From positions 183,706,001-183,770,000 of the forward strand of contig NC_082710.1 of the NCBI RefSeq assembly GCF_030144855.1: a DNA stretch of 64,000 nt. The letters are read 5' to 3'. Positions within the stretch are counted from its first letter, which is position 1; every line of letters begins with the position of its first letter. The notes below the pieces were generated by a model. That model was not told the DNA's origin. It made no database searches and was given only the letters and a program-made list of their open reading frames with translations. The DNA is from Hypanus sabinus. Its lineage: Eukaryota. Position numbers and translations under genes: made by a program. This document shows positions 12,590 to 50,632 of this stretch, piece after piece.

Positions 12590-13060
12590 TGCTGGACGAG
12601 GCAGACTCGCAGCCCGGCGCGGATTAAACGGATTCCGCGCTGTGGTATTCGATGACCGCGGCCAGGGGGCGTCACTGGCCCGGTGTAAATGGTCAATGCT
12701 ATCGGAGGTGCCGACGCCGGGCGCCGGGGTCGAGCGCGCTGAGGGAGAAGGAGGAGGAGTAGATTCCCGGAGGGAGAGGGTCCTGTTGGAATTCTCCAGG
12801 TGTGCGGGACCGATGCGCGGTCCCGACTGAGTCCAGACGCACACCTCAGCCGGGGCGGAGGCACCTCAGGATGGAGTCCCCCTCTGCCGATGGACCCGCT
12901 TCCGGACTCGGCTGTCCCGGGCGCTGAGGACCAGACTGTCCAGAATGCCGGCTGCGCGCTGCGTCTCCCGTCTGCTCATCTTGTCGTTTCTCACTCGCCT
13001 CGCCCAGGTAAGGAATCAGCCCGCCGCTCCAGGGTTAAACCGGCGTTGTCCCGGGCGAGT
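12590..13060 (+). promoter_or_regulatory. CpG island / promoter and first exon of the OLFML2-like gene
   Basis: High CpG density, GC box ggggcggag near 12852, strong donor CAG|gtaagg at 13007/13008. Confidence 0.7.
12945..13007 (+). CDS. OLFML2-like secreted protein, exon 1 (signal peptide MPAARCVSRLLILSFLTRLAQ)
   Basis: ATG with A at -3, hydrophobic core, 63 nt, phase-0 donor gtaagg; joins VGAEP of the next exon to give a plausible VGA/EP cleavage site. Confidence 0.75.
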
Positions 13061-13589
13061 TAGCAGGGTGGGGTGGACGTAGGAGCCGAGTTAGCCATTC
13101 GGCCCATCATGTCAACTCTGTCATTCATCATGGCTAATTTATTATCAATCTCACTCAGTTCTCCTGCCTTCTCCCTGTAACCTTTGATGCCTCGAATAAT
13201 TAAGAAGCCTTCACCCTCCGCTTTGAATAAATCCGTCTGTGGGGATGATTCACCACCCTCTGGCCAAAGAAGCCCCTCCTCGTCCATGGAGGAGCGGGTT
13301 GGCGAGTAACGTTGCGGCAGAAGGTTCCAGATGGTCTAGAACTGTCCGAACGAACGGCAGGGCTGCGGAGAAAAAGGGAACACATGGAACGGACAGCACA
13401 GGGACAATGTTGTGCTGATCCAATTTAGTATCAAATGACCAATAAACTAATCCCTTCTGCCTACACAATGTCCATGTCCTGTCACCACCCCAGGCAGGGC
13501 ATTCTGGGCATCCATCACTCTCTGTGTAAAACAAAAACTTGCCCCTCACATCTCCTTTGAAATCACCCTTCTGGTATTAAATATTTCTA

Positions 13590-15492
13590 GGTAATGACAG
13601 AGATCTAGAAGATTATAAGGCTAGTAGGATGGAACTTAAGAAAGAAATTAGGAGAGCCAGAAGGGGCCATGAGAAGGCCTTGGCAAACAGGATTAAGGAA
13701 AACCCTGAGGCATTCTATAAGTATGTGAAGATTGAGAGGATAAGACGCGAAAGAATAGAACTTATCAAATGTGACAGTGGGAAAGTGTGCATGGAACCGT
13801 AGGAAATAGCAGAGGTACTTAATGAATACTTTGCTTCAGTATTCACTATTGAAAAGGATCTTGGCGATTGTAGTGATGACTTACAGCAGACTGAAAAGCT
13901 TGAGCATGTAGATACTAAGAAAGAGGATGTGCTGGAGATTTTGGAAAGCATCAAGTTGGATAGGTCACCGGGACCGGACGAGATGTACTGGAAGCGAGGG
14001 AGGAGATTGCTGAGCCTCTGGTGATGATCTTTGCATCATCAATGGGGACAGGAGAGGTTCCGGAGGATTGGAGGGTTGCAGATGTCGTTCCCTTATTTAA
14101 GAAAGGGAGTAGAGATAGCCCAGGAAATTATAGACCAGTGAGTCTTAACTCGGTGGTTGGTAAGTTGATGGAAAAGATCCTGAGAGGCAGGATTTATGAA
14201 CATTTGGAGAGGCATAATATGATTAGGAGTAGTCAGCATGGCTTTGTCAAAGGCAACTCGTGCCTTATGAGCCTGATTGAATTTTCTGTGGATGTGATTA
14301 AAGACATTGATGAAGGTAGAGCAGTAGATGTAGTGTATATGGATTTCAGCAAGGCATTTGATAAAGTGCCCCATACAAGGTTTATTGAGAAAGTAAGGAG
14401 GCATGGGATTCAAGGGGACATTGTTTTGTGGATCCAGACCTGGTTTGCCCACAGAAGGCAAAGAGTGGTTGTAGACGGGTCATATTTTGCATGGAGGTTG
14501 GTGACCAGTGGTCTGCCTCAGGAATCTGCTCTGGGACCCCTACTCTTTGTGATTTTTATAAATCACCTGGATGAGGAAGTGGAGGAATGGGGTAATAAAT
14601 TTGCTGATGACACAAAGGTTGGAGGTGTTGTGGATAGTGTGGAGGGCTGTCAGAGTTTATAGCGGGACATTGATAGGATGCAAAACTGGGCTGAGAAGTG
14701 GCAGATGGAGTTTAATCCAGATAAGTGTGAGGTGGTTCATTTTGGTAGGTCAAATATGATGGCAGAATTTAGTATTAATGGTAAGACTCTTGGCAGTGGG
14801 GAGGATCAGAGGGATCTTGGGGCCCAAGTCCATAGGACACTCAAAGCTGTTGTGCAGGTTGACTCTGTGGTTAAGAAAGCACACAGTGCATTGGACTTCA
14901 TCAATTGTGGGTTTGAGTTTAGGAGCTGAGAGGTAATGTTGCAGTTATATAGGACTCTAGTTAGACCCCACTTGGAACACTGTGCTCAGTTCTGGTCACC
15001 TCACTACAGGAAGGATGTGGAAACTTTAGAAAGGGTGCAGAGGAGATTTACAAAGATTTTGGTTGGATTGGGGAGCATGCTTTATGAGAATAGGTTGAGT
15101 GAATTTGACCTTTTCTCCTCGGAGCGACGGAGGATGAGAGGTGACCTGATAGAGGTGTACAAGATATTGAGAGGCATTGATTGTGTGGATAGTCAAAGGC
15201 TTTTTCCCAGGGCTGAAATGGCTAGCATGAGAGGGCACAGTTTTAAGGTGCTTGGAAACAGGTACAGAGGAGATGTCAAGGGTAAGTTTTTTACTCAGAG
15301 AGTGGTGAGTGCGTGGAATGGGCAGCCGGCAATGGTGGTGAAGGCGGAAACAATAGGGTCTTTCAAGGCTCCTGGACAGGTACATGGAGCTCAGAAAAAT
15401 AGAGGGCTGTGGGTTACCCTTGGTAATTTCTAAGGTAAGGACATGTTCGGGCTGAAGGGCCTGTATTGTGCTGTAGGTTTTCTATGTTTCTA
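13590..15492 (+). mobile_element. 5'-truncated CR1 LINE (ORF2 RT, premature stops), nested in an opposite-strand CR1 fragment
   Basis: PGNYRPVSL, QHGFVKG, DFSKAFDKVPH, PQESALGPLLF, FADDTK motifs; stops at 14660 and 14927; 3' tail (ttcta)n. Confidence 0.92.
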
Positions 15493-48077: not shown

Positions 48078-50412
48078 ACAGGGGTCCGATACCAGTGTGA
48101 AATTGATGATTATTACACACAGGGAGAGTTGTGGGGGTCCGATACCAGTGTGAAATTAGATGATTATTACACACAGGGAGAGGTGTGGGGGTCTGATATC
48201 AGTGTGAAATTAGATGATTATTAGACACAGGGAGAGGTGTGGGGGTCCGATACCAGTGTGAAATTAGATGATTATTAGACACAGGGAGAGGTGTGGGGGT
48301 CTGATACCAGTGTGAAATTAGATGATTATTAGACACAGGGAGAGGTGTGGGGGTCTGATACCAGTGTGAAATTAGATGATTATTACACACAGGGAGAGGT
48401 GTGGGGGTCCGATACCAGTGTGAAATTAGATGATTATTTACACAGGGAGAGGTGTGGGGGTCTGATACCAGTGTGAAATTAGATGATTATTAGACAGGGA
48501 GAGGTGTGGGGGTCTGATACCAGTGTGAAATTAGATGATTATTAGACAGGGAGAGGTGTGGGGGTCTGATATCAGTGTGAAATTAGATGATTATTAGACA
48601 CAGGGAGAGGTGTGGGGGTCTGATACCAGTGTGAAATTAAATGATTATTAGACACAGGGAGAGGTGTGGGGGTCCGATACCAGTGTGAAATTAGATGATT
48701 ATTAGACACGGAGAGGTGTGGGGGTCTGATATCAGTGTGAAATTAGATGATTATTAGACACAGGGAGAGGTGTGGGGGTCCGATACCAGTGTGAAATTAG
48801 ATGATTATTAGACACAGGGAGAGGTGTGGGGGTCTGATATCAGTGTGAAATTAGATGATTATTAGACAGGGAGAGGTGTGGGGGTCTGATATCAGTGTGA
48901 AATTAGATGATTATTAGACACAGGGAGAGGTGTGGGGGTCTGATACCAGTGTGAAATTAGATGATTATTAGACACAGGGAGAGGTGTGGGGGTCCGATAC
49001 CAGTGTGAAATTAGATGATTATTAGACACAGGGAGAGGTGTGGGGGTCTGATATCAGTGTGAAATTAGATGATTATTAGACACAGGGAGAGGTGTGGGGG
49101 TGTGATACCAGTGTGAAATTAGATGATTATTACACACGGGGAGAGGTGTGGGGGTCTGATATCAGTGTGAAATTAGATGATTATTAGACACAGGGAGAGT
49201 TGTGGGGGTCCGATACCAGTGTGAAATTAGATTATTATTACACACAGGGAGAGGTGTGGGGGTCCGATACCAGTGTGAAATTAGATGATTATTAGACACA
49301 GGGAGAGGTGTGGGGGTCTGATATCAGTGTGAAATTAGATGATTATTAGACACAGGGAGAGTTGTGGGGGTCTGATATCAGTGTGAAATTAGATGATTAT
49401 TACACACGGGGAGAGGTGTGGGGGTCCGATACCAGTGTGAAATTAGATGATTATTACACACGGGGAGAGGTGTGGGGGTCTGATACCAGTGTGAAATTAC
49501 ATGATTATTAGACACGGGGAGTTGTGGGGGGTCTGATATCAGTGGGAAATTAGATGATTATTTGACACGGGGAGAGGTGTGGGGGTCTGATATCAGTGGG
49601 AAATTAGATGATTATTTGACACGGGGAGAGGTGTGGGGGTCTGATATCAGTGGGAAATTAGATGATTATTAGACACGGGGAGAGGTGTGGGGGTCTGATA
49701 TCAGTGGGAAATTAGATGATTATTTGACACGGGGAGAGGTGTGGGGGTCTGATATCAGTGTGAAATTAGATGATTATTTGACACGGGGAGAGGTGTGGGG
49801 GTCTGATATCAGTGTGAAATTAGATGATTATTAGACACAGGGAGAGGTGCGGGGGTCCGATATCAGTGTGAAATTAGATGATTATTACACACAGGGAGAG
49901 GTGTGGGGGTCTGATATCAGTGTGAAATTAGATGATTATTTGACACGGGGAGAGGTGTGGGGGTCTGATACCAGTGTGAAATTAGATGATTATTAGACAC
50001 AGGGAGAGGTGTGGGGGTGTGATACCAGTGTGAAATTAGATGATTATTACACACGGGGAGAGGTGTGGGAGTCTGATATCAGTGTGAAATTAGATGATTA
50101 TTTGACACGGGGAGAGGTGTGGGGGTCTGATACCAGTGTGAAATTAGATGATTATTAGACACAGGGAGAGGTGCGGGGGTCCGATATCAGTGTGAAATTA
50201 GATGATTATTACACACAGGGAGAGGTGTGGGGGTGTGAGACCAGTGTTAAATTAGATGATTATTACACATGGGGAGAGGTGTGGGAGTCTGATATCAGTG
50301 TGAAATTAGATGATTATTTGACACGGGGAGAGGTGTGGGGGTCTGATACCAGTGTGAAATTACATGATTATTAGACACGGGGAGTTGTGGGGGGTCTGAT
50401 ATCAGTGGGAAA
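48078..50412. repeat. 54-bp minisatellite (gggagaggtgtgggggtctgataccagtgtgaaattagatgattattagacaca), about 43 copies
   Basis: Tandem period of about 54 with occasional 52-53-bp variants. Confidence 0.95.
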
Positions 50413-50473
50413 TTCGTTTCCACTTCTAACAGATTTTGATTTTATTTGTTCGCCCCCCCCCCCCCCCACACAG

Positions 50474-50632
50474 AGACTGGATCGGAACAAACCCAGTGTC
50501 TGCACGCAGCTGAGAGAGACCTTAGCGAGGGTCGTCCAGCACCAGGAAATCTTCCAGCACTTGTTTGTCACCATCGGGGGCATGAGGGAGGAGATGAGCA
50601 AACTGAACTTGCTGCTTCAGGAACTTGCAAAG
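50474..50632 (+). CDS. OLFML2-like exon 4 (coiled coil RLDRNKPSVCTQLRETLARVVQHQEIFQHLFVTIGGMREEMSKLNLLLQELAK)
   Basis: Acceptor after poly-C (cacacag|) and donor AAG|gtactg; 159 nt, phase 0-0; IGGMREEMSKLNLLL resembles the recalled OLFML2A MLGIKKELSRLGLQL. Confidence 0.8.

Follow-up and report, generated by a model that had tools for sequence, protein, structure and literature searches.

A third OLFML2-family gene in elasmobranchs, with a probable origin in the major histocompatibility complex paralogon

Human OLFML2A and OLFML2B lie at 9q33.3 and 1q23.3, respectively (PMC5100274). Does the stingray Hypanus sabinus carry, next to a butyrophilin-like gene, one of these two genes or a third one? 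The question arose from a sequence-only reading of a 64,000-nt stretch of its genome (assembly GCF_030144855.1, NC_082710.1, positions 183,706,001 to 183,770,000; hereafter the window), which proposed a hidden, highly diverged OLFML2-type gene as a candidate third ohnolog in the major histocompatibility complex (MHC) paralogon. We show here that the exons are part of an intact gene of the OLFML2 family that is neither the true OLFML2A, which this genome carries separately, nor the OLFML2B known from a shark. We call this family OLFML2C (clade C), although its RefSeq name is 'olfactomedin-like protein 2A'. Taken as a whole, the account that we consider probable is that elasmobranch OLFML2C is the MHC (6p21-type) ohnolog produced by the two early vertebrate genome duplications and lost in tetrapods and teleosts.

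An intact gene apart from OLFML2A and OLFML2B

A scan of the window for open segments between AG and GT with the proposed lengths of 63, 231, 108 and 159 nt recovered the four exons exactly (4/4), on the plus strand and all multiples of three. They have canonical splice sites, all junctions are in phase 0, and the spliced frame encodes 187 aa. The peptide is identical at 187 of 187 positions to the N-terminus of XP_059825230.1 (P0004 in our protein set), a RefSeq "olfactomedin-like protein 2A" of 515 aa with a complete OLF domain (PF02191, E=9.9e-70, residues 267-513, encoded past the window end), and the product of exon 1 equals residues 1-21 of this protein. A tblastn search of the window with the 515-aa protein aligned only its residues 1-187; the coding sequence (CDS) spans 57,529 bp in GCA_030144855.1 and the gene ends near window coordinate 70473, outside the window. 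The four exons are the first four of the seven coding exons of the XP_059825230.1 gene. The exons, junctions and frame had thus all been read correctly, except that the gene is not hidden, being already in RefSeq with exactly the claimed joins.

The same joins are used by RefSeq models in many species, and are identical in the orthologs of 10 other elasmobranchs. A phmmer search of the full library with exon 2 retrieved a Mobula hypostoma protein (P0002, 514 aa, 74% identity over residues 22-97, E=2.4e-27) whose layout runs from a signal peptide through exons 2, 3 and 4 to the linker and OLF domain. Two further matches to exon 2 (P0001 and P0003) are repetitive bacterial proteins and were set aside as composition matches, and Pfam searches with the three internal exon peptides gave nothing useful. 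The Mobula protein in turn retrieved a group of elasmobranch proteins of 515-527 aa. Its best 120 matches are all C-type, 2A or 2B proteins, confirming the proposed membership of the OLFML2 family, and its N-terminal alignment with some 2A isoforms reaches 96% query coverage. A retrocopy was rejected, the introns being at family positions.

The genome of Hypanus holds a separate, true OLFML2A (XP_059849904.1, 630 aa), 79% identical to the catshark 2A (639 aa) and placed in the jawed-vertebrate 2A clade. It lies on an 83.66-Mb record, OLFML2C on one of 187.19 Mb, that is, on different chromosomes. A shark OLFML2B was found in Scyliorhinus torazame (GCB72751.1, 674 aa), which scores between tetrapod and teleost 2B in a length-restricted search with an amphibian 2B fragment. 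In a maximum-likelihood tree of 43 proteins (LG+C20+F+G4, unrooted), 11 elasmobranch sequences form clade C with 100/100 support. In clade B (100/100) the bony-vertebrate 2B proteins together are sister to the catshark protein, and clade A unites cartilaginous-fish and bony-vertebrate 2A, including Hypanus 2A, with 72/82 support (98/96 in a smaller set). Constraining C to group with shark 2B was 39 log-likelihood (lnL) units worse and was rejected by the approximately unbiased (AU) test (p=6e-5). Because this grouping is rejected beside a separate 2A, elasmobranchs have three OLFML2 genes, and the gene in the window is, as had been proposed, no one-to-one ortholog of either OLFML2A or OLFML2B.

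Databases name this gene '2A' for most species, but Leucoraja erinacea has it as '2B' and Hemitrygon akajei as 'uncharacterized protein' (P0004, P0012, P0331), a systematic error that would mislead ortholog tables and is corrected here. We also observed an older model of 883 aa from Scyliorhinus torazame (P0341, GCB71083.1) in which a TRIM gene (RING, B-box, coiled coil, PRY) is joined to a C-type OLFML2 gene; this is a mis-annotation, and it points to a TRIM gene on the same strand within ~60 kb in this species.

MHC location and origin of OLFML2C

Verissimo et al. 2023 list the genes of the MHC chromosomes of several species in supplementary tables (PMC10751288). On sawfish MHC chr34 the order is SLC44A4, A33-like TRIM genes, BTN3A1-like, atf6b (+) and 'olfactomedin-like protein 2A' LOC127585923 (-), followed by three butyrophilin genes (+), CENPA-like, Lhx9-like, CYP21A2 and TNXB (PMC10751288). 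By these tables, sawfish OLFML2C lies tail-to-tail with atf6b in MHC class III. White shark MHC chr19 has atf6b (+), then an unnamed minus-strand gene of 25.75 kb, with CYP21A2 and TNXB further on (PMC10751288); the white shark C gene (P0007) has a CDS span of 25.08 kb on a 115.85-Mb record, and its size and strand match that unnamed gene. A bony fish, the reedfish, has on chr1 (the MHCpara-6 equivalent) class I, fkbpl, atf6b (+), 'olfactomedin-like protein 2A' LOC114642770 (-), vps52 and rps18 (PMC10751288). In the catshark, the 163.47-Mb record of the C gene fits MHC chr13 (genes up to 163.38 Mb) and the 71.05-Mb record of 2A fits chr21, the MHCpara-9 chromosome (brd3 at 69.8 Mb). The sequence-only reading had suggested a 6p- or 19p-type paralog; because the tables place by atf6b in the MHC the gene itself in sawfish, one that matches it in size and strand in white shark and an OLFML2-like one in reedfish, the MHC link is supported and the type is 6p, and a 19p-type location was considered and rejected.

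In mouse the gene order is Nos1ap, Olfml2b, Atf6, Dusp12 (PMC6120100). The pair ATF6B-OLFML2C would then be the counterpart of ATF6-OLFML2B (human 1q23, mouse chromosome 1), both being copies of one two-gene block duplicated with the whole genome, with OLFML2A on the 9q33-type region and the MHC copy presumably lost in tetrapods and teleosts. Synteny supports this old origin of OLFML2C. The tree alone does not prove that the duplication has the age of the whole-genome events; the proposal of an MHC-type third copy is supported. Intact orthologs occur in at least 13 elasmobranch species, sharks and rays, and the gene may not be restricted to cartilaginous fishes, given the reedfish gene at the same position.

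Several points weigh against this account. In a competing explanation OLFML2C is a small-scale duplicate of OLFML2A that arose in cartilaginous fishes or elasmobranchs, landed by ATF6B and the butyrophilins and then evolved fast. A constraint that groups C with the 2A of cartilaginous fishes, or with that of elasmobranchs, lowers the fit by no more than 2.0-2.3 lnL units (AU p=0.28 both). The C branch is long, with the attendant risk of a long-branch artefact, and the tree has no outgroup that would order the splits among A, B and C. The evidence for shark 2B is one model from Scyliorhinus torazame, Hypanus 2B being outside the data set. The atf6b adjacency is known from other species, the Hypanus window ending inside OLFML2C; the orthology of reedfish LOC114642770 to C is a matter of position, and the reedfish protein is not in the best 120 matches to the Mobula protein. 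The support for splicing consists of gene models and cross-species joins, and the coiled-coil heptad score of the helical region described below does not clearly exceed that of shuffled sequences (p=0.08; best 28-residue window with 8/8 hydrophobic a/d positions). A small-scale origin would also fit the exon 4 motif, which is 2A-like and unlike that of 2B, and the fact that the C-type proteins retrieved are all elasmobranch, with no chimaera C protein among the best 120 matches to the Mobula protein. However, the reedfish, which is a bony fish, carries an OLFML2-like gene by atf6b at this position and in this orientation, and mouse Atf6 and Olfml2b are adjacent, as a block duplication would have them; had the gene inserted at random, such an arrangement would be an improbable coincidence. 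Further, 2A evolves slowly and its stem branch is near zero, while C evolves ~four times faster; the AU result is therefore expected under both an old and a young duplication. Sequence alone cannot date the duplication, which could have taken place anywhere between the A/B split and the shark-ray ancestor. We regard the small-scale duplicate as unlikely, the remaining doubt about an ohnolog origin being how old the duplication is and what the reedfish gene is.

Two other explanations dispute the gene itself. One, that it is a mis-sized, fast-evolving elasmobranch ortholog of OLFML2B or OLFML2A, could appeal to the NCBI names (2A in most species, 2B in little skate) and to an OLF-domain identity of ~55% to both 2A and 2B, and seems to us scarcely tenable. 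A 2A ortholog was rejected on the 630-aa Hypanus 2A in the 2A clade and on another chromosome, and a 2B ortholog on the catshark protein at the base of the 2B clade together with the failed C + 2B constraint; in the sawfish table, moreover, the neighbours are atf6b, butyrophilins and CENPA, not the 1q23 or 9q33 blocks. According to the other, the open frame is an annotation artefact or unexpressed relic, a set of exon-like pieces among repeats that are not spliced in the stingray. A relic would fit with the absence of Logan (assembled sequencing-run) copies of C-type proteins from the best 120 matches to the Mobula protein, with the loss in Hypanus of 10 exon 4 codons and of one Cys from a motif, and with introns swollen by satellite arrays. 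Yet the 515-aa frame is intact with a complete OLF domain, the exon joins are identical in >10 species whose lineages parted no later than sharks and rays did, the protein of the red stingray (Hemitrygon) is 93% identical to that of Hypanus, and several isoforms are annotated in other species, so we hold this to be very improbable.

Beyond its origin, OLFML2C could be a founding gene of the proto-MHC, kept for >450 million years in class III, with ATF6B tail-to-tail and butyrophilins head-to-head to it, for an immune or barrier-tissue role, a speculative extension that we think doubtful at best. One possibility under such a role would be a matrix protein that is secreted, binds glycans and is co-regulated with butyrophilins through the 5.3-kb intergenic region that they share; OLFML2C would then be a lost component of the ancestral MHC and not a passenger gene.

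An MHC ohnolog origin would add OLFML2 to the marker families that define the MHC paralogous regions, with 2A of the 9q33 type, 2B by ATF6 of the 1q23 type and 2C by ATF6B in the MHC. It would also mean that a gene absent from the mammalian MHC class III sat there in early jawed vertebrates, between ATF6B and CYP21/TNXB. In the literature searched (OLFML2 + paralogon, olfml2b + shark, olfactomedin + ATF6B + MHC) we found no paper on an MHC-linked olfactomedin gene, and the OLFML2-like MHC gene is an uncommented row in two supplementary tables of a paper whose main text does not mention it (PMC10751288). The gene was already known as a RefSeq model; what is new, and supported by the evidence above, is its recognition as a third, MHC-linked member of OLFML2.

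Gene structure, neighbours and repeats

The features of the window are collected in Table 1. Introns 1-3 measure 11,049, 13,048 and 13,030 nt, in agreement with the 11-13 kb repeat-filled introns described from the sequence: 44% of the sequence from intron 1 up to the window end consists of tandem arrays, their units being 29-67 nt long. The C-type gene extends over ~12 kb in skate and sevengill shark, against 57.5 kb in Hypanus, largely because the six minisatellite arrays fill its introns.

Table 1. Features of the 64,000-nt window of Hypanus sabinus. A slash marks the exon boundary in splice contexts, with intron letters in lower case.
Feature	Coordinates	Strand	Notes
Butyrophilin-like gene	1..7594	-	Head-to-head neighbour; B30.2 exon past window start
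Butyrophilin-like exons	leader 7534-7594 (ATG at 7594); IgV within 6513-6923; IgC within 4719-5081; transmembrane (TM) within 1682-1972	-	
OLFML2C coding exon 1	12945..13007	+	63 nt, 21 aa; carries the start codon and encodes the signal peptide MPAARCVSRLLILSFLTRLAQ; donor CAG/gtaagg; context ATG..CCCAG/gtaagg
Assembly gap, 277 N	18187..18463	.	Within intron 1; the one N run of the window; coding sequence not expected inside
OLFML2C coding exon 2	24057..24287	+	231 nt, 77 aa; Cys-rich; degenerate first motif CLGQC, second motif CKCIC; context ctatcaag/GTT..CTCAG/gtaagt
OLFML2C coding exon 3	37336..37443	+	108 nt, 36 aa; long helical (coiled-coil-like) region begins; context cccacag/ATC..GAGAAG/gtacgt
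OLFML2C coding exon 4	50474..50632	+	159 nt, 53 aa; remaining helical region, 2A-like motif REEMSKLNLLLQ; context cacacag/AGA..GCAAAG/gtactg
OLFML2C intron 4, first 13.4 kb	50633..64000	+	Exons 5-7 (linker and OLF domain) past window end
Six big minisatellite arrays	19379-22673, 24840-30302, 33528-37120, 48081-50414, 52052-53598, 56948-61373		Units 42, 29, 61, 54, 51 and 67 nt, respectively; 30-188 copies

The assembly gap lies ~5.2 kb 3' of exon 1 and ~5.6 kb 5' of exon 2. In orthologs of ten species no residue separates the equivalents of exons 1 and 2. The gap-free locus of the sevengill shark Heptranchias perlo (L002) has a 63-nt exon 1 (GCTCAG/gtaagg) 1.7 kb 5' of exon 2 on the same strand, and its 1.7-kb intron 1 contains no additional exon. 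Because the ortholog joins and the gap-free Heptranchias arrangement agree, order and orientation across the gap are as expected. In a blastn comparison of the window with L002, exon 3 (76% DNA identity to Heptranchias exon 3) is the sole unique collinear match, the rest being mostly shared repeats. Exon 4 has 159 nt in Hypanus as against 189 nt in Heptranchias and skate, 30 nt shorter, and before its final AK it has ~8 residues fewer than in Mobula and ~10 codons fewer than in Heptranchias or skate. The C-type gene has seven coding exons (Heptranchias, skate), one less than the eight of chimaera 2A, and the difference is an exon of the linker.

The butyrophilin neighbour was also read correctly: Pfam matches are V-set (1.5e-13) and C2-set_3 (butyrophilin Ig-C, 2e-20), and the annotated product has 499 aa with V-set, C2-set_3 and SPRY. 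Its start codon and that of OLFML2C lie 5.35 kb apart on opposite strands, and the head-to-head pair is also found in little skate, Heptranchias and sawfish. Around chimaera 2A and catshark 2B, no neighbour came up within 10 kb.

Human LHX2 (9q33.3) and LHX9 (1q31) share their paralogous regions with OLFML2A and 2B. Sawfish (NC_067438.1, 1625038-1639578) and reedfish (NC_041394.2, 66012742-66034368) have near MHC class III an Lhx9-like or Lhx2-like gene, 112 kb and 234 kb, respectively, from the OLFML2-like gene (PMC10751288 supplement). It may be another MHC-type third copy lost in mammals.

Among the repeats, arrays of the 61-nt unit occur at three sites and in both orientations (3-419, 22780-23627 and, as reverse complement, 33528-37120). 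The translation of this unit (..ERMFPIVGESRTRGH..) resembles the C-terminal tail of an interspersed retroelement open reading frame (ORF), scattered in the skate and shark loci too. Degenerate transposase-like ORFs on the minus strand (17118-18989) flank the N gap on both sides in one order, and the stretch at 18774-18989 weakly matches a BED zinc finger (E=0.044). No convincing terminal inverted repeats of this hAT-like remnant were found around the gap; a single transposon-like element spanning the gap is plausible. Intron 1 also holds a fragmented reverse-transcriptase ORF like that of a long interspersed nuclear element (LINE) on the plus strand (13581-15430), and the minus strand has similar reverse-transcriptase pieces at 3778-4469 and 54490-55522.

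The protein and its comparison with known systems

OLFML2 proteins have an N-terminal signal sequence and two tandem CXCXCX9C motifs (PMC5100274). The whole N-terminus of OLFML2C can be aligned to 2A and 2B over the signal peptide, the two Cys motifs and the helical region. The signal peptide was recognized by inspection only: its start is basic and its core hydrophobic, an A-Q cleavage context precedes the V that opens exon 2, and the 21-aa exon is conserved in sharks. The two strict motifs of photomedins are not kept in C, but their positional homology is clear. Of the first, rays have CX3C and sharks CXC or CXCXC; the second reads CXCXCX4C in the elasmobranchs other than Hypanus, which has CXCXC, and there a Ser (agc, 24225-24227) replaces the fourth Cys found in Mobula, Pristis, skate and all sharks. 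An altered disulfide-linked assembly in Hypanus is possible.

The motifs by which the gene had been assigned to OLFML2A/B fared unequally. S.G..C.C.C is present in both OLFML2A and 2B, and the 36-aa exon has a counterpart in chimaera 2A, its equal length being approximate (tblastn aligns 33 residues, aa 116-148). The motif G.++E+S+L.L.L matches 2A (KKEISKLGLQLL) and has no match in 2B. Exon 4 retains the 2A-type KKEISKL..LLQK, which 2B has lost. The match to RV.S.RAR.E is weak.

An AlphaFold2 (AF2) model with a mean predicted local distance difference test (pLDDT) score of 51.8 has helices at 3-21, 96-110 and 113-189, the last two with pLDDT 57-80, and a partly confident propeller. The helical region aligns with the coiled-coil region of 2A. 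The Ser/Thr-rich linker is shortened to ~70-80 aa (residues 188-266 of P0004), and the coding exons are fewer than the eight or more usual in the family.

Photomedins are secreted matrix proteins that bind chondroitin sulphate-E (PMC5487772). By analogy with them, we infer that OLFML2C is a secreted, oligomeric, glycan- or matrix-binding protein. It would be secreted via its 21-aa signal peptide and would assemble into oligomers through the helices encoded by exons 3-4 and the Cys motif left in exon 2, while its C-terminal OLF beta-propeller would act in the extracellular matrix, with glycosaminoglycans or glycoproteins as its probable ligands. The linker is shortened and the Cys motifs are eroded, which suggests that assembly or partner has changed.

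With OLFML2A (photomedin-1, human 9q33.3), OLFML2C shares the signal peptide, a CXCXC motif with S-x-G before it, a third exon that is short (108 nt here), the KKEISKL..LLQK helical region, a C-terminal OLF domain ~55% identical and the exon order. OLFML2A differs in its length (~640 aa against ~515-527 aa in C), in having eight coding exons instead of seven, and in its place on the MHCpara-9 chromosome rather than in the MHC; C evolves ~four times faster, its first CXCXCX9C motif is degenerate and its second is CXCXCX4C, the last Cys being Ser in Hypanus. OLFML2B (photomedin-2, human 1q23.3, by ATF6) shares the family architecture, and ATF6-OLFML2B mirrors ATF6B-OLFML2C, but it has 670-790 aa, a long linker, both CXCXCX9C motifs and an exon 4 region that has diverged from the 2A/C motif. 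The gene sets of the MHC paralogon (PBX, NOTCH, RXR, BRD and ATF6/ATF6B, on human chromosomes 1, 6, 9 and 19) have, as we propose for OLFML2, one copy in the MHC and others on 1q/9q (PMC10751288); OLFML2 differs from them in that its mammalian MHC copy is gone and the 9q/1q pair alone is visible.

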